Shown here one piece after another: positions 28,224 to 63,533 of a DNA stretch of 64,000 nucleotides. Made by a program: the position numbers and the translations under genes. The notes under the pieces are model-generated. The model was given only the letters and a program-made list of their open reading frames with translations, made no database searches and was not told the origin of the DNA. Origin of the DNA: Scyliorhinus canicula (Eukaryota); assembly GCF_902713615.1 (NCBI RefSeq), contig NC_052157.1:58354325-58418324 (forward strand). Direction: 5' to 3'. Positions within the stretch are counted from its first letter, which is position 1. The number at the start of each line of letters is the position of its first letter.

Positions 28224-28493
28224 CTTAAATGTGTCATTTAATCCTATTCTGAAATAATAAGGTCCTGCATCTTTCTGTGTGATATTGGTTATAGTCAGCG
28301 AGCAGTCACCATCTTTCAGGCTTCCAGACAGCCGGGCCCGATGGCGGAAACATGGCACGTCGTGATTGTGATCCTCGGAGTGAAAGGCTGCAGTTGACGT
28401 GTCTCCTTTCTTGTTATTACACCAGACTCCAACTTGAGATTGGTTTCGCGTATTTGATGGACTACTGCAATTACATGGAATCTGTACACACAT
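28224..28493 (-). pseudogene. Truncated V-set exon of a third Siglec-like paralog (C)
   Basis: CVQIPC...FRHRARLSGSLKDGDCSLTITNITQKDAGPYYFRIG; the N-terminus and acceptor are replaced by minisatellite and the final strand is missing. Confidence 0.85.
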
Positions 28494-29745
28494 CTGAGGG
28501 AGTGCTGGACTGTCAGAGTGTCAGTACTGAGGGAGTGCTATACTATCAGACGGTTAGTACTCAGGGTGTGCTGCACTGTCAGAGGGTCAGTACTGAGGGA
28601 GTGCTATACTGTCAGAGGGTTAGTACTCAGGGAGTGCTGCACTGTCAGAGTGTCAATACTGAGGGAGTGCTGCACTATCGGAGGGTCAGTACTGAGGGAG
28701 TGCTGCACTATCGGAGGGTCAGTACGGAGGGAGTGCTGCACTGCTAGCTGGTCAGTACTGAGGGAGTGCTGCACTGTGAGAGGGTCAGTACTGAGGGAGT
28801 GCTGTACTCTCAGAGGGTCAGTACTGAGGGAGTGCTGCACTGTCAGAGAGTCAGTACTGAGGGAGTACTGCACTGTCAGAGGGTCAGTACTGAGGGAGTG
28901 CTGCACTGTCAGAGTGTCAATACTGAGGGAGTGCTGCACTGTCAGAGGGTTAGCATTGAGGGAGTGCTGCACTTTCAGAGGGTCTGCATTGAGGTAGTGC
29001 TGCACTGTCAGAGGGTGAGTACTGAGGGAGTGCTGCACTGTCAGAGGGTCAGTAATGAGGGAGTGCTGCACTGTCAGAGTGTCAATACTGAGGGAGTGCT
29101 GCACTATCAGAGGGTCAGTACTGAGGGAGTGCTGCACTATCAGAGGGTTAGCATTGAGGGAGTGCTGCACTGTCAGAGGGTCAGCATTAAGGTGGTGCTG
29201 CACTGTCAGAGGGTCAGTACTGAGGGAGTGCTGCACTGTTAGCTGGTCAGTACTGTGGGAGTATTGCATTGTTGGAAGGTTAGTATTGAGAGAGTGCTGC
29301 CCAATTGCAGGTTCTGCACAGAGTGAGTGCTGGACTGTCGGAATGTCAAGACTTAATGACTGCTGCATTGTTGAAGTGTCAGTACTGAGGGAGCATTGCA
29401 CTGCCAGAGGGTCAGTATTGAAGGAGTATGTCACTCTCAGAGGGTCAATATTGAGGGAGTGCTGCACTGCCGGTCGGTCAGAACTAAGGGATTTCTACGC
29501 TCTGGATGGGTGAGTACTGAGGTAGTGCTGCACTGTCGGAGGGCAAGTACTGAGGGAGCACTGCACTCTCAGATGATCAGTGCTGCGAGGGTACTGCACT
29601 GTTGGTGAGTCAGTGCTGTGGGAGTGCTGCACTGTCGGAGGGCAAGTATTGAGGGAGCGCTGCACTGTCAGATGATCAGTGCTGCGAGAGTACTGCACTG
29701 TTGGTGAGTCAGTGCTGTGGGAGTGTTGAACTGTTGGAGGGTCCT
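28494..29745. repeat. 33-bp minisatellite (CAGTACTGAGGGAGTGCTGCACTGTCAGAGGGT), copy 1
   Basis: Same unit as 58540-61270, in the intron after the first C2 exon; degenerates to the right. Confidence 0.92.
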
Positions 29746-30241
29746 ATTGAGTCATAGACTCATGTGTCATCTTTGTTACAAGGGACTTTCAGATATTTCC
29801 ACTACCAAGTCTGTTAATAAACTCTACTCACTATTGTACCTTATATTAACCAGTACAATACAGTAAGAGGCTCTCCATAGAATTATCTATCTTCATTCTT
29901 TGTTGTCACGTGATCTTATTTAATTTCTGATGTATACCATTTATTTATATATTTACTCTTCGCACTTTATGTTATATTTCCCCCGAAGTCTCTGACACCT
30001 TAAGATATATGTACATTATTTACCTTATCCTCTTTCATAGTGGATGTTAAATCTGGGTCCCTTCCGCTCCCTCAGAAGGAGATAAATATTCCCAAGGCAC
30101 TTTGCAAGGAGAATTCACACTGGAAATATTTCTCACTGAGAAGGACAATTTTTGTCTTCAGCACATTGCTGTTTGAGGGTTCATGCTCTGCCCTCTCTAA
30201 ATTAATACAGCTCATATAGAATTCATTTTGTCCCTACTTAC

Positions 30242-30535
30242 ATTGCACAGTGAGTATGAGGGTCCGCTCCGATGAAACAGATGGATATCTCAGTCTACAG
30301 GTGAGAGTTTGTCCGTGGTGTCTGAGTGATGGGATCAGGGTCAGAACAGAAGTATAGGTCAGAGTGACGCCATGCTGAGTTACTGTATTTGAGACTGATC
30401 CAGGTACGTCAGTGGGAGTGTCCCAGGTTAAGGCAGGTGCTGTTCCGTTGCATGTTGTGTTGAAGGTGCAGCTTATGTCCACACGCTTTCCTGCAATAAT
30501 TTCAGCCAGGAATATCCTGGGTTTATCTGTGAAAT
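30242..30535 (-). CDS. Siglec-like gene B, C2-set Ig exon
   Basis: 294 bp, AG/GT, phase 1-1; DFTDKPRI...ISCTFNTTCNGTAPALTW...GQTLTCRL...LTVQ; extra Cys for the interdomain bond. Confidence 0.9.
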
Positions 30536-31280
30536 CTGACACACAGAGAATGGATATTTTTAGATAAATATAATGTGACGAGCAGTTCAAATAGAAATCA
30601 CAGTCCCACAAGTGAAAGCCCCTTTCCAAAGATGGTATGAGAACAGAAAGATTACAATGATCAATAAAGTATTTCCCATTTTCTATCATAGAGGAGTGTC
30701 TGTCCTCAGGTTCATGCCCTTTGACTCTAAGACCATTGAATTGAGATTCCTTCGTGAGAGGGGAGGAGTTCAGGCTGAACTGGCTCATTACTTTACAGAA
30801 ATCTGACAAATTAAAATTAAATCTGGACTAGAGCAAAATGGAAACTATCTGAACCATCACCTGCAACAGATGAGCAAATTATTGATCACATGGCTGTTTC
30901 TGGCATCACAGCAGAGACTTCATTTCAAGAATTATTTCACTGTGAATCGCTTTGGGATGTTCGGAGGGGGTGAAAGGCGCGCGAGAAACATGAGTCTTTA
31001 TTTTGTCGATATGTAAACTTTTAAACAAGATTCGAGAGATCGATGGGAGTGGATAACCTGATAACATTGGTGAGCACAATCAATCAATTTAATTATTGAT
31101 ATTAAAGAGAGTATTAAAGGTTGCTTTAGGACTGAAGTGGAAATATCACCAGGTTATTGATAATCAGACACTGTGTTATAATAAGCTGTTTTTTGTGTTA
31201 ATGTGTAAATGTCACAGTTTGTGATCTTTCCCATTGAGTATTAGATGTGAATTGTTGAGTAATTATAATACAGCACTTAC

Positions 31281-49500: not shown

Positions 49501-52500
49501 TTCCCAAGCATAACTTCTCAAGCATACTTGTCACATATGCCCCAGCATCCAATCCCTCGCTGCCCTCCGGGAGGCCAAAGATCCTCAAGTTCTGCCTCTG
49601 GGACCTATTGTCCAGGTGCTCCAATTTCTCCTGCAGCCTTTTCTGGGGGTCCCTCATCATAAGAACATAAGAACTAGGAGCAGGAGTAGGCCATCTGGCC
49701 CCTCCAGCCTGCTCCGCCATTCAATTAGATCATGGCTGATCTTTTGTGGACTCACCTCCACTTTCCGGCCCGAACACCATAACCCTTAATCCCTTTATTC
49801 TTCAAAAAACTATCTATCTTTACCTTAAAAACATGTAATGAAGGAGCCTCAACTGCTTCACTGGGCAAGGAATTCCATAGATTCACAACCCTTTGGGTGA
49901 AGAAGTTCCTCCTAAACTCAGTTCTAAATCTACTTCCCCTTATTTTGAGGCTATGCCCCCTAGTTCTGCTGTCACCCGCCAGTGGAAACAACCTGCCCGC
50001 ATCTATCCTATCTATTCCCTTCATAATTTTAAATGTTTCTATAAGATCCCCCCTCATCCTTCTAAATTCCAACGAGTACAGTCCCAGTCTACTCAACCTC
50101 TCCTCATAATCCAACCCCTTCAGCTCTGGGATTAACCTAGTGAATCTCCTCTGCACACCCTCCAGCGCCAGTACATCCTTTCTCAAGTAAGGAGACCAAA
50201 ACTGAACACAATACTCCAGGTGTGGCCGCACTAACACCTTATACAATTGCAACATAACCTCCCTAGTCTTAAACTCCATCCCTCTAGCAATGAAGGACAA
50301 AATTCCATTTGCCTTCTTAATCACCTGTTGCACTTGTAAACCAACCTTCTGTGACTCATGCACTAGCACACCCAAGTCTCTCTGAACAGCGGCATGCTTT
50401 AATATTTATCGTTTAAATTATAATCCCGTTTGCTGTTATTCCTACCAAAATGGATAACCTCACATTTGTCAACATTGTATTCCATCTGCCAGACCCGAGC
50501 CCATTCACTTAACCTATCCAAATCCCTCTGCAGACTTCCAGTATCCTCTGCACTTTTCGCTTTACCACTCATCTTAGTGTCATCTGCAAACTTGGACACA
50601 TTGCCCTTGGTCCCCAACTCCAAATCATCAATGTAAATTGTGAACAATTGTGGGCCCAACACGGATCCCTGAGGGACACCACTAGCCACTGATTGCCAAC
50701 CAGAGAAACACCCATTTATCCCAACTCTTTGCTTTCTATTAATTAACCAATCCTCTATCCATGCTACTACTTTACCCTTAATGCCATGCATCTTTATCTT
50801 ATGCAGCAACCTTTTGTGTGGCACTTTGTCAAAGGCTTTCTGGAAATCCAGATATACCACATCCATCGGCTCCCCGTTATCTACTGCACTGGTAATGTCC
50901 TCAAAAAATTCCACTAAATTAGTTAGGCATGACCTGCCTTTTACGAACCCATGCTGCGTCTGCCCAATGGGACAATTTCTATCCAGATGCCTCGCAATTT
51001 CTTCCTTGATGATAGATTCCAGCATCTTCCCTATTACCGAAGTTAAACTCACTGGCCTATAATTTCCTGCTTTCTGCCTACCTCCTTTTTTAAACAGTGG
51101 CGTCACGTTTGCTAATTTCCAATCCACCGGGACCACCCCAGAGTCTAGTGAATTTCGGTAAATTATCACTAGTGCATCTGCAATTTCCCTAGCCATCTCT
51201 TTTAGCACTCTGGGATGCATTCCATCAGGGCCAGGAGACTTGTCTACCTTTAGCCCCATTAGCTTTCCCATCACTCCCTCCTTAGTGATAACAATCCTCT
51301 CAAGGTCCTCACCTGTCATAGCTTCATTTCTATCAGTCGCTGGCATGTTATTTGTGTCTTCCACTGTGAAGACCGACCCAAAAAACCTGTTCAGTTCCTC
51401 AGCCATTTCCTCATTTCCCATTATTAAAACTCCCTTCTCATCCTCTAAAGGACTGATATTTACCTTAGCCACTCTTTTTTGTCTTATATATTTGTAAAAA
51501 CTTTTACTGTCTGTTTTTATATTCTGAGCAAGTTTACTTTCATACTCTATCTTACTCTTCTTTATAGCTTTTTTAGTAGCTTTCTGTTGCCCCCTAAAGA
51601 TTTCCCAGTCCTCTAATCTCCCAGCAATCTTTGCCACTTTATATGCTTTTTCCTTCAATTTGATACTCTCCCTTATTTCCTTAGATATCCACGGTCGATT
51701 TTCCCTCTTTCTTCCGTCCTTCCTTTTTGTTGGTATAAACCTTTGCTGAGCACTGTGAAAAATCGCTTGGAAGGTTCTCCACTGTTCCTCAACTGTTCCA
51801 CCATAAAGTCTTAGCTCCCAGTCTACCTTAGCTAGTTCTTCTCTCATCCCCTTGTAATCTCCTTTGTTTAAACACAAAACACTAGTATTTGATTTTACTT
51901 TCTCACCCTCCATCTGTATTTTAAATTCCACCATATTGTGATCGCTCCTTCCGAGAGGATCCCTAACTATGAGATCATGAATCAATCCTGTCTCATTACA
52001 CAGGACAAGATCTAGGACCACTTGTTCCCTCGTAGGTTCCATTACATACTGTTCTAGGAAACTATCGCGGATACATTCTATAAACTCCTCCTCACGGTTG
52101 CCTTGACCGACCTGGTTAAACCAATCGACATGTAGATTAAAATCCCGCATGATAACTGCTGTACCATTTCTACATGCATCAGTTATTTCTTTGTTTATTG
52201 CCTGCCCCACCATCTCGTTACTATTTGGTGGCCGATAGACTACTCCTATCAGTGACTTTTTCGCCTTACTATTCCTGATTTCCACCCAAATGGATTCAAC
52301 CTTATCCTCCATAGCACCGATGTCATCCCTTACTATTGCCCGGATGTCATCCTTAAATAACAGAGCAACACCACCTCCCTTACCATCCACTCTGTCCTTC
52401 CGAATAGTTTGATACCCTCGGATATTTAACTCCCAGTCGTGACCATCCTTTAACCATGTTTCAGTAATGGCCACTAAATCATAGTCATTTACGATGATTT

Positions 52501-52900
52501 GTGCCACCAACTCATTTACTTTATTCCGAATACTACGAGCATTCAGGTAAAGTACACTTATGTTGGTTTTTTTTAACACCTCCGCCTCCGCCTCCAGCAC
52601 GGTTACCTGGTCCTCGTGCTCGGCCACCTTCTCCTCCGCCTTTTGGATCACCAGTCCGTGGGCTTCAGAACCCTGTTCCACCCGGTCAATCGAGACATGG
52701 ACCAGAAGTGGTCTTATAAGAAGAAATAGCCGAGCAAAGAAGGCGCGTGCCAAACCTACAGCACAGGAAACCATGGCAGAGGTGTAGGATCCTGGCTTGG
52801 TGGCCCAGTGGTCAACAGTACAGTTGGTTAAATTCATTCAGGAGAGCTTCGCCAAGCAAAAGAAGGAATGTTTAGACCCGATCAAGGCACACGTTTATTA
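46580..52900 (-). mobile_element. L1/Tx1-clade LINE, degenerate, ORF1 split by a CR1
   Basis: ORF1 LDNRSQRQNLRIFGLPEG; endonuclease LITWNIRGLN..ETQL; GKALGPDGY; C-terminal LSLIQFKVVHR. Confidence 0.85.
49661..52576 (-). mobile_element. Young CR1 LINE with essentially complete ORF2 (APE endonuclease + RT), one frameshift
   Basis: LYLNARSIRNK, GDYKG, GVPQGSVLGP, FADDTK; 1-bp deletion near 50405; ORF resumes 50375-49752. Confidence 0.95.
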
Positions 52901-53932
52901 ATCAGAGAGAAATCTGACCTGAGCCACATTAGGAAATGTTAGGTACAGGTGACCAAAACTTGGTCAAAGAGGTCAGTTATTTCAGAATGATTCATGGAAG
53001 AGATAAAGAGAGAGAGATGGAGAGGTTTAAGGAGGGAATTACAGAGCTTAGAGCCCCAGGCAGCTGAAGGCATGGCTGCCAATGGTGGAGCAATGGGAAT
53101 AGGGGTAGTTCAGGACTGAATTGAATCACAGAGTGATGAAAATCTGGGACTGCGTATTTATCTGGGATTGGGGGGGGGGGTGAGAAGCATTGGAGTAATT
53201 CAGAAGTCCAATATGACTCTTCTTCCGGACATGGAAATTCAAACCGTTTCTCCCTGAGGGCGACGGAGAGAGTTCCCCTGACCACAGCTCTGCCACATTT
53301 CAGAAGGACAATCTTACTTTTCGCTGGAGTCTTTCACCGCTCCAGGACACCCCAAAGTGATTCACAGCCAACAAAGGACTTTTTTTTCTGGCTTTGTCAA
53401 TGTTGTAATGCTGGAAATGTGGCCAGTCAGTTGCACACAGCAATGTCTGAGCAACATTGTAAACGTGGTCGGTAAACCTGCACTGGCTCACTGTCGCTAA
53501 ACAAAATCGTTAACATGAACAAAGTGCTTCTCTCAGCTGACACTAGGTATTGCCAACATTGCAAACACAGCAGAAATGTACTTGTGGCGCAAATATATAT
53601 GGCACATCGGAATTTCCCATTACAAATGAGCACACAGGATTTTAAAGTTTGTGAAGGACATATATGACACCAGGAAATGATGCTTTGAAGTTAGGAATTG
53701 CTCACTGGAATATATTACATTTTTTAAAATGTTTAAAATTGTCTGAGCATTTTAATTGCTTGTATTAATAGATATATTATCCAGAAATAACAAAGCTTTT
53801 CACAAACTTTGAAAGCATGAATGCAGCATTCAGAAAGCATCTTCAGAACTGATACAAAAGTTGTGCAATATCCTTTTTTTATTACGATTTGACCGTATTG
53901 TCTTCACACACCCCACATCCCCTCTCCCCGTT

Positions 53933-54101
53933 TCAGTTTCTCTGGAATCTGATCTCTGCGTATTCCATGACCTCGCTCCTGTGGACAGTCCTGTCACCAT
54001 TGGGCCCCTTTGAGAAGTTGATTGTGGCGTAGGGAAGGTTATCGGGTTTGTCGGTGTGCCCTTGCGAGTGAAAGCAGCTGCAGCGACTCTCGTCCCAGGT
54101 A
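53933..54101 (-). CDS. Siglec-like gene A terminal cytoplasmic exon with two tyrosine motifs
   Basis: Acceptor CTTCTCCTCCAG, phase 2; TWDESRCSCFHSQGHTDKPDNLPYATINFSKGPNGDRTVHRSEVMEYAEIRFQRN*; AATAAA about 50 nt after the stop. Confidence 0.85.
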
Positions 54102-54199
54102 CTGGAGGAGAAGGAAGGTCAAAGAGACATTGTCAAACTGTCATCTGAATTCCACAGTTTAAATTGGATTGCAGCTGACTCAAAACGATTAAACAGCAT

Positions 54200-55700
54200 A
54201 CAGAGCTCTGATTTCTAAATTCTCTTATATCTGAACCAGACAAGCAATCAATAAAAATTCGACTCGCAATTGGGAATGAAGGTCTACACAGGGTGGAAAC
54301 ATCAGGAGCTGAAGGATCCCTAAAATAAATGGACATCTTTGGAAGACCAGTTGAGATTCAGGTTAAAATTCTGTATTGATCAGTTAGATTTCTAGTAATT
54401 TCAACAACAACCTATAGAATCCATTGACCACTTTGTCAGCAGATATAGAGCAAAGGGTATGTACTGTGATTTTGCAAATGCAGAGCTAGCAGACAGAATT
54501 GGTGAGTTGGTGATCGCATCCACTCCCATGTAAGTTGTCCAGAAAGATCTGCTGGACAAGCCCAAAGCATATAACATCGAAGAGCTACTCAAGGATGAAT
54601 GTATGTGTCAAGTGATAGTCGCGAATCAACACAGTTTACAGCTTTGGTGTTCAACCATCTGAGATGTGACATCAACATGCAGGAGATCAATTTCTTCAGC
54701 TTTATTTCTTCGAGTGCTGGCATATGTCCCAATCGGAGTGAAAGAGAGGATATTGAAGTCTGGCCAAGTCCTCAAGATAAGGACAATCTTCAAAATTGTT
54801 GAGGTCTTGTTAATTTCTTGTTTCCATACATTCCCAATTTTGCTCAAAATACATTTTTGCGAAAGTGGTTGCTGAGAAATGATGTGTTGTTCCTGTCGCA
54901 CGAAGACCACCAATACCTCGCTAGGCATCTGCCAGAGAGTCATTATTAAAGGCAGCCAGGTCACCATACTGGGATATTGGTGACCTGATATTCTTCAACA
55001 TCATCACTCACACATGGGCATAGATTAGACATGAAGACTCACAGGAAAGGCAGTCTCTTCATTGGGTATGAACCTTGATATAGGAGACATGTCAAGAACA
55101 TATGCCAGGTCAGGACAAAGAACCACTGATTCCACATGCAGTTCCTACCCATTTTGATACAAAACCCCATCTGGCATCTTTCATGTCTATGGCACTGACC
55201 TCATTTTCATTTGTTTCTTCCTTTACCAAGAACCCATCCTGTGCGCACTGGCGATCAAACACCAATCTATTCTAATATATCAGCAACATCTGTTCTGCAC
55301 AGTCTCAGTGCTAATTTCCGTTTATTTCATTTGACTCGAGAGATCATTACAGATAACAGTCCATAAGTTATTGGGAATGCATTTCAGGATTTATGTGGTC
55401 AGTGGAATATCAATCAGACTACTTCTTCTCCTTCCCCTAGATCTAATGCCTTAGCTGAATGAATGAGTTGTGTGGTGAAATATCTAATTCACAAATGTAG
55501 AGCAAGCAAGTTCTAGACATCGTAATGTTATGTGCGAGACTAATGCCTTCATGTACAACTGTTCCATTGCTGGCACAACTCATGTTTGGGAGATAAGTGT
55601 GTACAAATTGACCGACTGTTACACATTCTACTGTTTCAGAAACTAAAGAACAACTTTTAAAACCGCACCGACCTCCTCAGAAGACAAACACGGGACACAA
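54200..55700 (+). mobile_element. Highly degenerate Gypsy-like remnant
   Basis: Gag-like LADRIGELVIASTP..QKDLLDKP and integrase-like pieces; no intact ORF. Confidence 0.45.
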
Positions 55701-55710
55701 CTGACAGAGT

Positions 55711-56660
55711 ACCCTTCGTCGTCCAGTACTTTCCTGGTGCAGAGAAACTACGATATCTTCTTCGTAGCCTTCAACACATCATCGATGAAGATGAACATCT
55801 TGCCAAGGTTATCCCCACACCCCCACTACTTGCCTTCAAACAACCACGCAACCTCAAACAAACCATTGTTTGCAGCAAACTACCCAGCCTTCAGAACAGC
55901 GACCACGACACGACACATCCCTGCCAGGGCAATCTCTGCAAGACGTGCCAGATTATCGACATGGATACCACCATTACACGTGAGAACACCACCCACCAGG
56001 TACGCGGTACACACTCGTGCAACACGGCCAACGTTGTCTACCTCATACTCTGCAGGAAAGGATGTCCCGAAGCGTGGTACATTGGCAAGACCATTCAGAC
56101 GCTGCAACAACGAATGAACGGGCATCGCGCGACAATCACCAGGCAGGAATGTTCCCTTCCAGTCGGGGAACACTTCAGCAGTCAAGGGCATTCAGCCTCT
56201 GATTTCCGGGTAAGCGTTCTCCAAGGCGGCCTTCAGGACAGGCGACAACGCAGAATTGCCGAGCAGAAACTTATAGCCAAGTTCCGCACGCATGACTGCG
56301 GCCTCAACCGGGATCTTGGATTCATGTCGCATTACATTCACCCCCCACCATCTGGCCTGGACTTGCAAAATTCTACCAACTGTCCTGGTTTGAGACAATT
56401 CACACCTCTTTAACCTGGGATTACCCCTATCTCTGGATCTGTAAAGATTTGATTACCTGCAAATGCTCGCATTCCAAGCATTGTCTGGCATCTTTGACTT
56501 TGTCTGTATATATGTTTCTGGAACATATCTCTTCATTCACCTGAGGAAGGAGCAGTGCTCCGAAAGCTAGTGTTTGAAACAAACCTTTAGGACTTTAACC
56601 GGGTGTTGTAAGACTTCTTACTGTGCTCACCCCAGTCCAACGCCAGCATCTCCATATCGT
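55711..56660 (+). mobile_element. Penelope-like element 3' part (GIY-YIG endonuclease + terminal repeat)
   Basis: ORF 55961-56413 NVVYLILC...WYIGKT...RMNGH...GLN preceded by CxxC-rich linker. Confidence 0.9.
56538..56572 (+). ncRNA. Minimal hammerhead ribozyme motif in the Penelope terminal repeat
   Basis: CAC CTGAGGA A GGAGC-AGT-GCTCC GAAA GC TA GTG. Confidence 0.7.
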
Positions 56661-57219
56661 AATAAATGAACCCATAGCATGTGAACCCAATCCCCTCCAA
56701 ATGATGTATGTCTCATGTCTTGCGCAACACATAAATCCAAGGTATTATATCACTATAATAACAAGACATTTGTTATTGTAGTTAATTGGTCTCAACCAAG
56801 GACTTTGGCTATTTTAAATGGAATCTAATTTCCCACTGTGTTGTGACTCTGGGTCAAGTGGGAGTGGAACTAACTGCACACTAGCCCAGGGTGTTGTGAC
56901 ACTCCATGGCTCTACAATTTATTTTCCATTCAGCTACTTATTCAATTCCCCATTTAAAAGTTCCTATTCTATCTTTCCACCGTCCTTTCAGGCAGCACAT
57001 TCTCGATCACAAGAATGATTAGAATTAGAATTCAGTTATTAGAATTCATCTGGATACAGGGCAATGAAAGACATACTCCCGATCATGAGGGAAAAAGCGA
57101 TCTCTTGCAGGCATAAGGGGTGGCACATAATCCAAGGAAACTGATTACTGATTTATGCAAGATTGAAATAAATATTGAGAAATATTGAGAAAAAGATCAG
57201 CTTAAAGCTTCACACTTAC

Positions 57220-57316
57220 TTTCTCACATACACGAAGATTAACATTCCAGCCAGGAAACAACTCAAGATGATCCCAGCCGTGATCAATCCTACTGTCCAG
57301 TTTTTAGAGTCTCTAC
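57220..57316 (-). CDS. Siglec-like gene A transmembrane exon (uncharged)
   Basis: TTTTTACAG / GTAAGT; (R)RDSKNWTVGLITAGIILSCFLAGMLIFVYVR(N); phase 1 in, phase 2 out, matching both neighbours. Confidence 0.88.
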
Positions 57317-58127
57317 CTGTAAAAACAGCCATTAGTTACTGTGTTACAGTTTCAGAATGATGCTCCGATGTGTCTCAGCAGCGACGCACTAACTCCATTT
57401 TTAAATATTCCTTCTTGGGCAATGCCAACGTTTATTGTTCATCCTTAGTTTCCCCTTGAGAAGGTGGTGGGGAGACTTTCTCCTGAACCACTGGCTTGAA
57501 ACAAACTGGGAGACCCAGTCAGAGGGCAGTTAAGAGTCAGCCCTGTTGGTGTTTGAGACTGGAGTCACATATGCACCTGTTAAAATGGGCAGGATTCCTT
57601 TGTTTAAAGATTCATCAGTGACCTATTTTATATTTATAATCTCTATTTACAGATCGACCCAACACATTAAAATAATTGATTGTCAGATCACTATCACATT
57701 GTTGTTTGGGATCTTGCTGTGTGCAAATTGGTAGCCAATTTTCCCCATCACAACATGATTACCTGTCAAATGTATTTAATTGGCTGTAAAGTGTTTCTGG
57801 ACAACCTCGTCATTATATAAATGCAGGTCTTCCTTTTAAATGTGACATTTACACAAAATTTTGATCAGTGTAATATATGAATATTAATCAAACTCCCAAT
57901 TTACTCTGGACTGAAACCTGTTAATACACCGAGTCACAGAGGAGATATTCGGGATGGATGACCAAAAGGTTGATGTAAAGAGGTGTGTGTGTGGGTGCAT
58001 GTGTGTATACGCATATGTGTGTGCATATACACACGTGTGTGTGCATGTATATGCACGTGTGTGTACGCACATTTGTGTGTGTATGTGTGTCTGTGTTTGG
58101 GAGATGTTGAAGTCTGTGTACACTCAC

Positions 58128-58539: not shown

Positions 58540-61270
58540 GTTCAGTACTGAGAGAGTGCAACACTGCTGGAAGGTCAGTATTGCAGGAGTGCTATCCTAT
58601 CAGAGGGTCAGTACTGAGCGAGCGCAGCACTGTCAGAGGATCAGTACTCAAGGAGTGCTATCCTATCAGAGGGTCAGTACTGAGCGAGCGCTGCACTGTC
58701 AGAGGATCAGTACTCAAGGAGTGCTGCAGTGTCAGAGGGTCAGTACTGAGGGAGCGCCGCACTGTCAGAGGGTCAGTACTGAGGGAATGCTGCAGTGTCA
58801 GAGGGTCAGTTCTAAGGGAGTGCTGCACTGTCAGAGAGTCAGTACTGGGGAAGTGCTGCAGTGTCAGAGGGTCAGTACTGAGGTGGTGCTGCATTGTCAG
58901 AGAAGAGTCAGTACTGAGGGAGCGCTGCATTGTCAGAGAGTTAGTACTGAAGGAGGGCTGCACTGTCAGAGAGTCAGTACTGAGGAAGTGCTGCAATGTC
59001 AAAGGATCTGTACTGAGGGAGTGTTGCACTGTCAGAGGGTCAGTACTGAGGGACTGCTGCACAGTCAAAGTCAGTACTGAGGAAGTGCTGCATTGTCAGA
59101 GAGTCAGTACTGAGGGAGGGCTGCAATGTCAGAGAGTCAGTACTGAGGGAGGGCTGCAATGTCAAAGGACCTGTACTGAGGGGAGGCTGCACTGTTGAAG
59201 GGTCAGTACTGAGCAACTGCTGAACTATCACAGGGTCAGTACTGAAGGAGCGCTGCGATGTTGGAGCGTTAGTACTGAGGGATTGCTGCACTGTCGGAGG
59301 ATCAGAACTCAGGGAGTACTGCACTGACAGAGGGTCAGTACTGAGGGAGTGCTGCACTGTCAGAGGGTCAGTACTGAAGGAGCGCTGCACTGTCAGAGGG
59401 TCAGTACTGAGGGAAGAAGCACTGTCAGAGGGTCAGAACTGAAGGAGCGCTGCACTGTCAGAGGGACAGTACTGAGGGAGTCCTGCACTGTCAGAGGGTC
59501 AGTACGGAAGGAGCGCTGCCCTGTCAGAGGGTCAGTACTGAGGGAGTGCTCCACTATTGGAGGGTCAGTACTAAGGGAGTGCTGCACTGTCAGAGAGTCA
59601 GTACTGAGGGAGTGCTGCACTGACAGAGGGTCAGTACTGAGGGAGTGCTGCACTGTCAGAGGGTCAGTACAGAGAGTGTGCTGCAAATTCGAAGGGTCAG
59701 TATTGAGGGAGTTCTTCACTGTCAGAGGGTCAGTACTGAGGGAGTGCTGCACTGTCAGAGGGTCAGTACTGAAGGAGTGCCGCACTGTCAGAGAGTCAGT
59801 ACTGAGGGAGTGCTGCACTGTCAGAGGGTCAGTACTGAGGGAGTGCTGCACTGTCAGAGGGTCAGTCCAGAGAGTGTGCTGCAAATTCGAAGGGTCAGTA
59901 CGGAGGGAGTTCTTCACTGTCAGATGGTCAGTACTGAGGGAGTGCTGCACTGTCAGAGGGTCAGTACTAAGGGAGTGCTGCAATGTCAAAGGATCTGTAC
60001 TGAGGGAGTGCTGCACTGTCAGAGGGTCAGTACTGAGGGACTGCTGCACAGTCAGAGTCAGTACTGAGGAAGTGCTGCATTGTCAGAGAGTCAGTACTGA
60101 GGGAGGGCTGCAATGTCAAAGGTCCTGTACTGAGGGGATGCTGCACTGTTGAAGGGTCAGTACTGAGCAACTGCTGAACTATCACAGGGTCAGTACTGAA
60201 GGAGCGCTGCAATGTTGGAGCGTTAGTACTGATAGATTGCTGCACTGTCGGAGGATCAGAACTCAGGGAGTACTGCACTGACAGAGGGTCAGTACTGAGG
60301 GAGTGCTGCACTGTCAGAGGGTCAGTACTGAAAGAGCGCTGCACTGTCAGAGGGTCAGTACTGAGGGAGTGATGCACTGTCAGAGGGTCAGAACTGAAGG
60401 AGCGCTGCACTGTCAGAGGGACAGTACTGAGGGAGTCCTGCACTGTCAGAGGGTCAGTACTGAAGGAGCGCTGCCCTGTCAGAGGGTCAGTGCTGAGTGA
60501 GTGCTCCACTATTGGAGGGTCAGTACTGAGGGAGTGCTGCACTGACAGAGGGTCAGTACTGAGGGTGTGCTGCACTGTCAGAGGGTCAGTACTGAGGGAG
60601 TGCTGCACTGTCAGAGGGTCAGTACAGAGTGTGTGCTGCAAATTCGAAGGGTCAGTATTGAGGGAGTTCTTCACTGTCAGAGGGTCAGTACTGAGGGACT
60701 GCTGCACAGTCAGAGTCAGTACTGAGGAAGTGCCGCACTGTCAGAGAGTCAGTACTGAGGGAGTGCTGCACTGTCAGAGGGTCAGTACTGAGGGAGTGCT
60801 GCACTGTCAGAGGGTCAGTCCAGAGAGTGTGCTGCAAATTCGAAGGGTCAGTACGGAGGGAGTTCTTCACTGTCAGATGGTCAGTACTGAGGGAGTGCTG
60901 CACTGTCAGAGGGTCCGTACTGAGGGAGTGCTGCACTGTCAGAGAGTCAGTACAGAGTGTGTGCTGCAAATTCGAAGGGTCAGTATTGAGGGAGTTCTTC
61001 ACTGTCAGAGGGTCAGTACTGAGGGAGTGCTGCACTGTCAGAGGGTCAGTACTGAAGGAGTGCCGCACTGTCAGAGAGTCAGTACTGAGGGAGTGCTGCA
61101 CTGTCAGAGGGTCAGTACTGAGGGAGTGCTGCACTGTCAGAGGGTCAGTCCAGAGAGTGTGCTGCAAATTTGAAGGGTCAGTACGGAGGGAGTTCTTCAC
61201 TGTCAGATGGTCAGTACTGAGCGAGTGCTGCACTGTCAGAGGGTCAGTGCTGAGGGAGTGTTGGACTGAC
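58540..61270. repeat. 33-bp minisatellite, copy 2, with higher-order duplications
   Basis: Same unit as 28494-29745; variant block GTGTGCTGCAAATTCGAAGG recurs six times; about 59060-59640 is repeated at about 60050-60560. Confidence 0.95.
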
Positions 61271-62755: not shown

Positions 62756-63533
62756 CAGAAACATGAAGCCGTGTTGCAGGATAATAGTTATGGCCGAGAC
62801 CACTGTCAAATTCTATCCTGAAAAAATAAGGTCCCGTATCTTCCCGCCTGATGTTGTTTATTATCAGGGAACAGTCTCCGTCTTTCAGGTCTCCAGACAG
62901 CCGGGTCCGATGGCGGAACCGTGGCAATTCGTGTTTGTGATCCTTGGAGTGGAAGGCTAGGGGCGCCCAGGGATTCACTTCCTCAATATTAAACCAGACT
63001 ATTCTTCGCGGTTGGTTTTTCAGACACAATGGATAACTGCAATGACTTGGAATCTTCACACACGAACCTTCCTGCGCTGTTACCTCTCGTAGAGTTTGGC
63101 CTTTCCACCAGAAACGGCCCTAGGGTTGCTGGCACCCCGGGCAAGCTGAACTTCGGCGCCCTTCGGTTGGGGGGGGGGGCTCCGTTCACCGAGGGAAGGG
63201 GGGGGGCGCCGGAGTGACCTGGTACATGATCGGGACCCACCGATCGGCGGGCCGGTCTTTCTGTCGGCAGGCCTCCTTTCTTCCACCGGCGTGCCTGGAT
63301 CCATCCGCCATGTTTGTGCGGGGCGGCCTGGGGGAGGGCGGCCACCGCGCATGCGCTGGTTGGTACCGGCCCAACTGCGCATGCGCGGGACCCGAGTCTT
63401 TTACGCGGCGCCGGGTCTCTGACGCCGGTCACACACTCCTTGATGGCGCCCCCTAGCACATGGCGCCCCGGGCGACTGCCCGAGTTGCCGGTACCTTGAG
63501 CCGGCCCTGCTTTCCACTCTTGTGACAGTTCAG
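62756..63533 (-). pseudogene. Siglec-like gene A V-set exon interrupted by a hAT MITE
   Basis: Removing 409 bp (insert + one TSD) restores a 369-bp exon with GDCSL and YFFRIE; leader exon lies beyond the window. Confidence 0.9.
63109..63509. mobile_element. Non-autonomous hAT-type element, 401 bp
   Basis: 8-bp TSD CTTTCCAC (63101-63108 and 63510-63517); imperfect TIRs CAGAAACGGCCC / GAGCCGGCCCTG. Confidence 0.88.

Follow-up and report, generated by a model that had tools for sequence, protein, structure and literature searches.

In human Siglec-7 and Siglec-9, the paired tail tyrosines (Y437/Y460 and Y433/Y456, respectively) lie 23 residues apart within the motifs IQYAPL/LQYASL and NEYSEI/TEYSEI (PMC7226588), and the tail of human CD33 ends in ...ELHYASLNFH...STEYSEVRTQ (PMC9570199). 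LHYASL has been called an ITIM (immunoreceptor tyrosine-based inhibitory motif), and TEYSEI has been called similar to an immunoreceptor tyrosine-based switch motif (ITSM-like) (PMC2722167). A study of fish Siglecs stated that fish genomes are without inhibitory CD33-related Siglecs (PMC7226832), and reviews count only Siglec-1, -2, -4 and -15 as ancient (PMC9630641, PMC9008986); such statements appear to be based mainly on teleosts. The present study concerns a Siglec gene with a tail of this layout in a 64-kb window of Scyliorhinus canicula, the small-spotted catshark (64,000 nucleotides of contig NC_052157.1; all positions below are counted from the first nucleotide of the window). The segment at positions 53,933 to 57,316 very probably belongs to the gene modelled as XP_038669858.1 (P0015; RefSeq name "sialic acid-binding Ig-like lectin 13", 415 amino acids), of which it holds the transmembrane (TM) exon, last intron and terminal coding exon.

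The translation of the four spliced window exons, which encode the second and third Ig domains (C2a and C2b), the TM segment and the tail (Table 1), gave 280 residues, all of them (280/280) identical to residues 136–415 of XP_038669858.1, and GT...AG borders were present at all introns between these exons. As the C2b exon ends in GAA C/GTGAGT (slash, exon border), the TM exon is entered in phase 1. Its own borders read acag/GT AGA GAC ... GTG AGA AA/GTAAGT, with the G of the donor at 57219; on the rough position weights devised for this analysis, the donor AAA/GTAAGT scored 9.1 and every other GT in the exon 5.7 or less. The exon encodes RDSKNWTVGLITAGIILSCFLAGMLIFVYVR plus two bases of an asparagine codon, and the membrane span, WTVGLITAGIILSCFLAGMLIFVYV, contains no charged residue. 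The acceptor of the tail exon, ccttccttctcctccag/T ACC at 54101, follows a long pyrimidine tract and scored 8.0. Since an in-frame TGA stands 18 nt upstream of this acceptor (54121–54119), the tail exon cannot begin earlier and opens in phase 2. Direct joining of the two exons (AA+T) yields asparagine, and the joined reading runs ...IFVYVR-N-TWDESRCSCFHSQGHTDKPDN-LPYATI-NFSKGPNGDRTVHRSEV-MEYAEI-RFQRN up to a TGA at 53937–53935; the tail exon thus comprises one base and 55 whole codons, TWDES...RFQRN, before the stop. The cytoplasmic tail of the protein is about 58 residues long, and no further copy of the tail exon was found in the rest of the window. The exon borders and the identity with RefSeq agree with the original prediction, made from the letters of this DNA, that the TM exon ends and the tail exon opens in phase 2.

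The same YVR-N-TWDES junction was present in two annotations of S. torazame, namely XP_072325010.1 (P0007), which was found via a search with the C2b exon and reads ...IYVRNTWDES...LLYATINFSK...TEYAEIRFQRNCA, and the separately deposited GCB64090.1 (P0090). An intervening phase 2-2 exon, which had been allowed for beforehand, is unused in the catshark models, and when longer tails from other sharks served as tblastn queries, neither a homologous intervening exon nor an RKTATQERVS... remnant was found in the 3.1-kb intron. The idea holds for lamniform relatives to the extent that they have additional cytoplasmic sequence (RKTATQERVS...) between VRK and the last exon. If the donor at 57217–57219 were unused, the frame would continue as AAG TAA and give a hypothetical tail-less receptor ending in ...VYVRK.

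The tail had also been described as hidden. This is true of the program-made list of open reading frames, from which the tail exon is absent, but not of the public RefSeq annotation, which already contains it in XP_038669858.1. Neither the gene nor its tail sequence is therefore new as a feature; the gene is uncharacterised, and in itself it is ordinary, with a correct annotation and a familiar signalling design.

Concerning transcription, the evidence is indirect: of the sampled k-mers of 53850–54101, 55–100% were present in contig sets guessed to be RNA, which came from several studies and whose runs carry the label "RNA? (a guess)", and sets X2 and X3 contained them fully. Such sets contained only 10–19% of the k-mers of the 3.6-kb stretch 53800–57400 (X1, 35%). 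As this share is close to the exonic share of the stretch, about 11%, the data fit spliced RNA. A run from a related species contained 46% of the tail-exon k-mers.

The proximal motif LPYATI, around Tyr384, fits the ITIM consensus [S/I/V/L]xYxx[I/V/L], as had been proposed, and lies in a cytoplasmic tail that follows an uncharged TM segment. The distal motif MEYAEI, around Tyr407, fits neither this consensus nor the ITSM consensus TxYxx[V/I], owing to Met at position -2, and is ITSM-like only; the two tyrosines are 23 residues apart. The expected CD33-type layout with such a distal motif matches the tails of human CD33, Siglec-5, Siglec-7 and Siglec-9 (PMC9570199, PMC2722167, PMC7226588). Like Siglec-7 and Siglec-9, the catshark protein has one V-set and two Ig domains of C2 type, a TM segment free of charges, an ITIM followed by xEYxEI, and the spacing of 23 residues. 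In Siglec-7, the distal -2 position is also occupied by a residue other than Thr (Asn, as against Met in the catshark) (PMC7226588), although its ectodomain is distant, with V-only Siglec-7 chains scoring 38–39 bits. The end of the catshark tail, ...NLPYATINFS...VMEYAEIRFQRN, also resembles that of CD33, which differs in having two Ig domains and a tyrosine spacing of 18 (Y340/Y358).

This tail type was aligned across Scyliorhinus, Carcharodon, Cetorhinus, Pristis, Amblyraja and Hypanus, and tblastn with the tail of a great white shark protein (P0067) matched the catshark tail exon with E = 7e-15. Shark tails nearly always read LLYA/T-x-I and TEYA-E/Q-IRF, usually in the form LLYATI...TEYAEI, and ray tails read xxYAxL and T/L/V-x-Y-A/S-E-I/L; the spacing of the tyrosines is 23 residues in shark tails and 21 in ray tails. 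The catshark paralogue P0014 and the two S. torazame proteins carry LLYATI and TEYAEI, and the distal motif was TEYAEI or TEYAQI across P0014, S. torazame, Carcharodon and Cetorhinus. Between XP_038669858.1 and P0014, identity was complete in the TM exon (32/32) and amounted to 49/55 residues in the tail exon, 86/98 in C2a, 80/95 in C2b and 93/135 in the signal peptide plus V domain. Conservation is thus stronger at the signalling end. Such a pattern would be expected if a receptor evolved fast while its signalling end stayed under constraint; gene conversion might also yield it.

A second tail type occurs at other loci of the same elasmobranch family (P0013, P0017, P0019, P0023, P0028, P0032 and P0084). 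Most of these proteins have Lys or Arg at the outer TM edge (WKAGLL...) and then a long tail, which in many species ends in ...IYxNC...xIYANV or VYGNV, ITIM-like motifs at the extreme C-terminus.

Pfam assigned to XP_038669858.1 a V-set domain at residues 24–134 (E = 1e-19), a C2-set_2 domain at 147–221 and an I-set domain at 250–326. The annotated protein has three Ig domains, in line with the expectation of an architecture that is neither that of CD22 nor that of MAG; CD22 has seven such domains, and MAG has five. In the solved-structure search with the whole protein, the top 15 PDB matches were MAG, Siglec-8, CD33, Siglec-10, Siglec-5, CD22 and sialoadhesin. MAG (Siglec-4) was the top full-length match (E = 8e-40), followed by Siglec-8 (1e-32), CD33 (2e-26), Siglec-10 (2e-20), Siglec-5 (8e-18) and CD22 (1e-16). 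Judged by its sequence, XP_038669858.1 is clearly a Siglec. A Siglec is expected to carry an essential sialic-acid-binding arginine on strand F of its N-terminal V-set domain; in the alignment, the YFFRI arginine of the catshark protein stands opposite that of the YYFR motif of MAG, the essential arginine of MAG.

The higher score of MAG comes partly from its longer chain; over three domains, MAG and Siglec-8 are level (116.1 and 116.8 bits, respectively). We know of no ITIM-plus-ITSM-like tail in MAG. With the V and first C2 domains, CD33 scored best among the solved relatives (89.6 bits), followed by MAG (82.6), Siglec-10 (77.6), Siglec-5 (69), CD22 (46) and Siglec-15 (37.5). The term "CD33-like" used in the original prediction accordingly fits the tail and the architecture and is not proven orthology, as the V and first C2 domains appear about equally close to CD33 and to MAG.

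By analogy with mammalian CD33-type Siglecs, the V-set arginine would bind sialic acid on self glycans, and Src-family kinases would phosphorylate Tyr384 and Tyr407. The tandem SH2 domains of SHP-1 or SHP-2 might then dock on both phosphotyrosines and damp activating signals in leukocytes.

Several points count against the reading of this locus given above. Compared with the S. torazame proteins and the paralogue, the ITIM of this gene has proline instead of Leu at -1, and its distal motif has methionine instead of Thr at -2; both substitutions could weaken SH2 docking; Met at -2 probably abolishes SAP-type ITSM binding, whereas phosphatase docking may stay intact. A phmmer search of 1.84 billion representatives, with the 54-residue tail as query, retrieved two weak matches only, both to long repetitive proteins, and a word search with the tail alone among proteins of 30–95 amino acids gave no significant relative outside the family. 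Because neither search returned such a relative, the proposed homology to mammalian tails rests on motif resemblance. In addition, the window does not encode residues 1–135 of XP_038669858.1, which comprise the signal peptide and V-set, and the support for transcription and for the TM-tail junction comes from gene models and from shares of k-mers.

The resemblance to CD33-type tails might be a matter of convergence, with the shark family forming a separate MAG-like lineage that gained its tail independently; we regard this as a real, if rather doubtful, alternative. Pairs of a hydrophobic-x-Y-A-x-L motif and a following x-E-Y-x-E-I motif occur in many unrelated inhibitory Ig receptors, and the ITIM table of PMC7226588 lists similar motifs in KIR and LILRB receptors. 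The ectodomain scores given above, with CD33 close to MAG on two domains and MAG level with Siglec-8 on three, are compatible with a MAG-like origin, as is the failure of the tail alone to retrieve any mammalian protein, and the NCBI names across the family vary among MAG-like, CD33-like and Siglec-5 to -16. Against convergence, however, one and the same receptor combines a Siglec V-set and the aligned arginine with LxYAxxNF and xEYxEI[RK] close to the C-terminus, the arrangement that human CD33 also shows (PMC9570199). Its 23-residue spacing is, moreover, identical to that of Siglec-7 and Siglec-9, and the gene is part of a tandem cluster that also contains an activating partner.

A bolder reading, which we consider somewhat less likely than not, is that the CD33-type signalling tail dates to the common ancestor of jawed vertebrates, and that teleosts lost the CD33-related-type Siglecs and sharks and rays kept and expanded them. 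If this is true, such Siglecs would not be a tetrapod or mammalian invention, and the ancestral parts would include the ITIM, a gap of about 21–23 residues, TEYxEI near the C-terminus, the Siglec V-set, and tandem arrays with activating partners that carry Arg in the TM segment. A protein search returned relatives from about 20 species of sharks and rays, whereas full-text searches of the literature that was accessible gave no paper on members of this family from either group. Judging from these proteins, cartilaginous fishes have a sizeable Siglec family with a CD33-type inhibitory tail and activating partners, present in databases as automatic annotation only. This family would be a deep outgroup for dating paired sialic-acid "self" sensing.

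The V exon that lies within the inhibitory gene in the window is not the V domain of the annotated protein. A 401-bp insertion, bordered by an 8-bp direct repeat, GTGGAAAG, disrupts this exon and shifts its frame; the RefSeq model skips the exon, which is 58% identical to the V domain in use. The broken exon also contains YFFRIE. Residues 1–135 of XP_038669858.1 matched the V exons of the window at 58–63% at best. As the annotated gene spans 26.6 kb, its 5' exons should lie about 16 kb past the window end, and the insertion has not necessarily knocked out the gene, because the RefSeq protein takes its V domain from there. It is unlikely that the gene is decaying in S. canicula and that the RefSeq model is a chimera with a signal peptide and V exon borrowed from further upstream, its own V exon transposon-destroyed and its tail losing motifs: the insertion with its 8-bp target duplication, the match of just 58% between residues 1–135 and the in-window V exon, and the L to P and T to M changes beside the motif tyrosines are what decay would leave, but all four downstream exons have open frames and consensus splice sites, the TM exon agrees with that of the paralogue at every residue, the RNA-like contig sets contain the tail exon, the ITIM still fits its consensus, and the distal -2 position of human Siglec-7 is likewise not Thr (PMC7226588).

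Table 1. Window positions of the catshark Siglec gene, its neighbour and the surrounding repeats
Feature	Position	Strand	Length	Phase in/out	Remark
In-window V exon	63533-62756	minus			insertion 63101-63517
C2a exon (second Ig, C2-set)	61787-61494	minus	294 nt	1/1	
C2b exon (third Ig, I-set/C2 type)	58409-58128	minus	282 nt	1/1	
TM exon	57316-57220	minus	97 nt	1/2	residues 329-360 of XP_038669858.1, identical
Last intron	57219-54102	minus	3.1 kb		GT...AG
Terminal tail exon	54101-53935	minus	167 nt	2/stop	residues 361-415 of XP_038669858.1, identical
Proximal motif LPYATI	54037-54020	minus			around Tyr384
Distal motif MEYAEI	53968-53951	minus			around Tyr407
AATAAA polyadenylation signal	53883-53878	minus			52 nt past stop
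Siglec-14-like gene	16320-43046	minus			XP_038669862.1/XP_038669859.1
Siglec-14-like exon 1	43046	minus			
Siglec-14-like V exon	~31649-31282	minus			
Siglec-14-like C2a exon	~30225-30572	minus			
Siglec-14-like TM exon	16433-16320	minus			
33-bp minisatellite, C2a-C2b intron	58542-61268				~83 copies
33-bp minisatellite, Siglec-14-like gene	28494-29743				after C2a exon
Fragment of third V exon	28240-28491				abuts minisatellite array
Penelope-like GIY-YIG reading frame	55961-56413	plus			in last intron; Pfam GIY-YIG E = 4.6e-4, below curated cut-off
LINE, endonuclease + reverse transcriptase	50399-52837	minus	812-aa frame		~1 kb downstream of gene's end

The window contains only Siglec-like genes and transposons, without flanking marker genes, and seven catshark family members lie on one 165-Mb record. 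The next gene downstream carries the RefSeq name "Siglec-14"-like and has two Ig domains, a membrane span that contains an Arg (ILGIRAVIF), and a tail of very few residues, all features of an activating type. As this gene encodes a two-Ig partner with a TM arginine, the locus looks like a candidate inhibitory/activating receptor pair. Its V exon is 84–88% identical to the broken V exon of the inhibitory gene and its C2a exon about 80–86% identical to the C2a of that gene, while the V domain in use (signal peptide plus V) shares 90/135 aligned residues with this partner. The arrangement resembles the Siglec-5/Siglec-14 pairs in that an inhibitory gene adjoins an activating-type gene and the V and C2a sequences are common to both loci. 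It is unlike them in that the near-identical V exon of the catshark inhibitory gene is broken and skipped.

A 33-bp minisatellite fills the C2a-C2b intron of the inhibitory gene, and the same repeat follows the C2a exon of the Siglec-14-like gene, where the array borders directly on part of a third V exon. The shared minisatellite marks the V-C2a-minisatellite block as duplicated. Among the transposons, the last intron of the inhibitory gene carries debris that includes the Penelope-like reading frame, and a LINE lies beyond the 3' end of the gene (Table 1).

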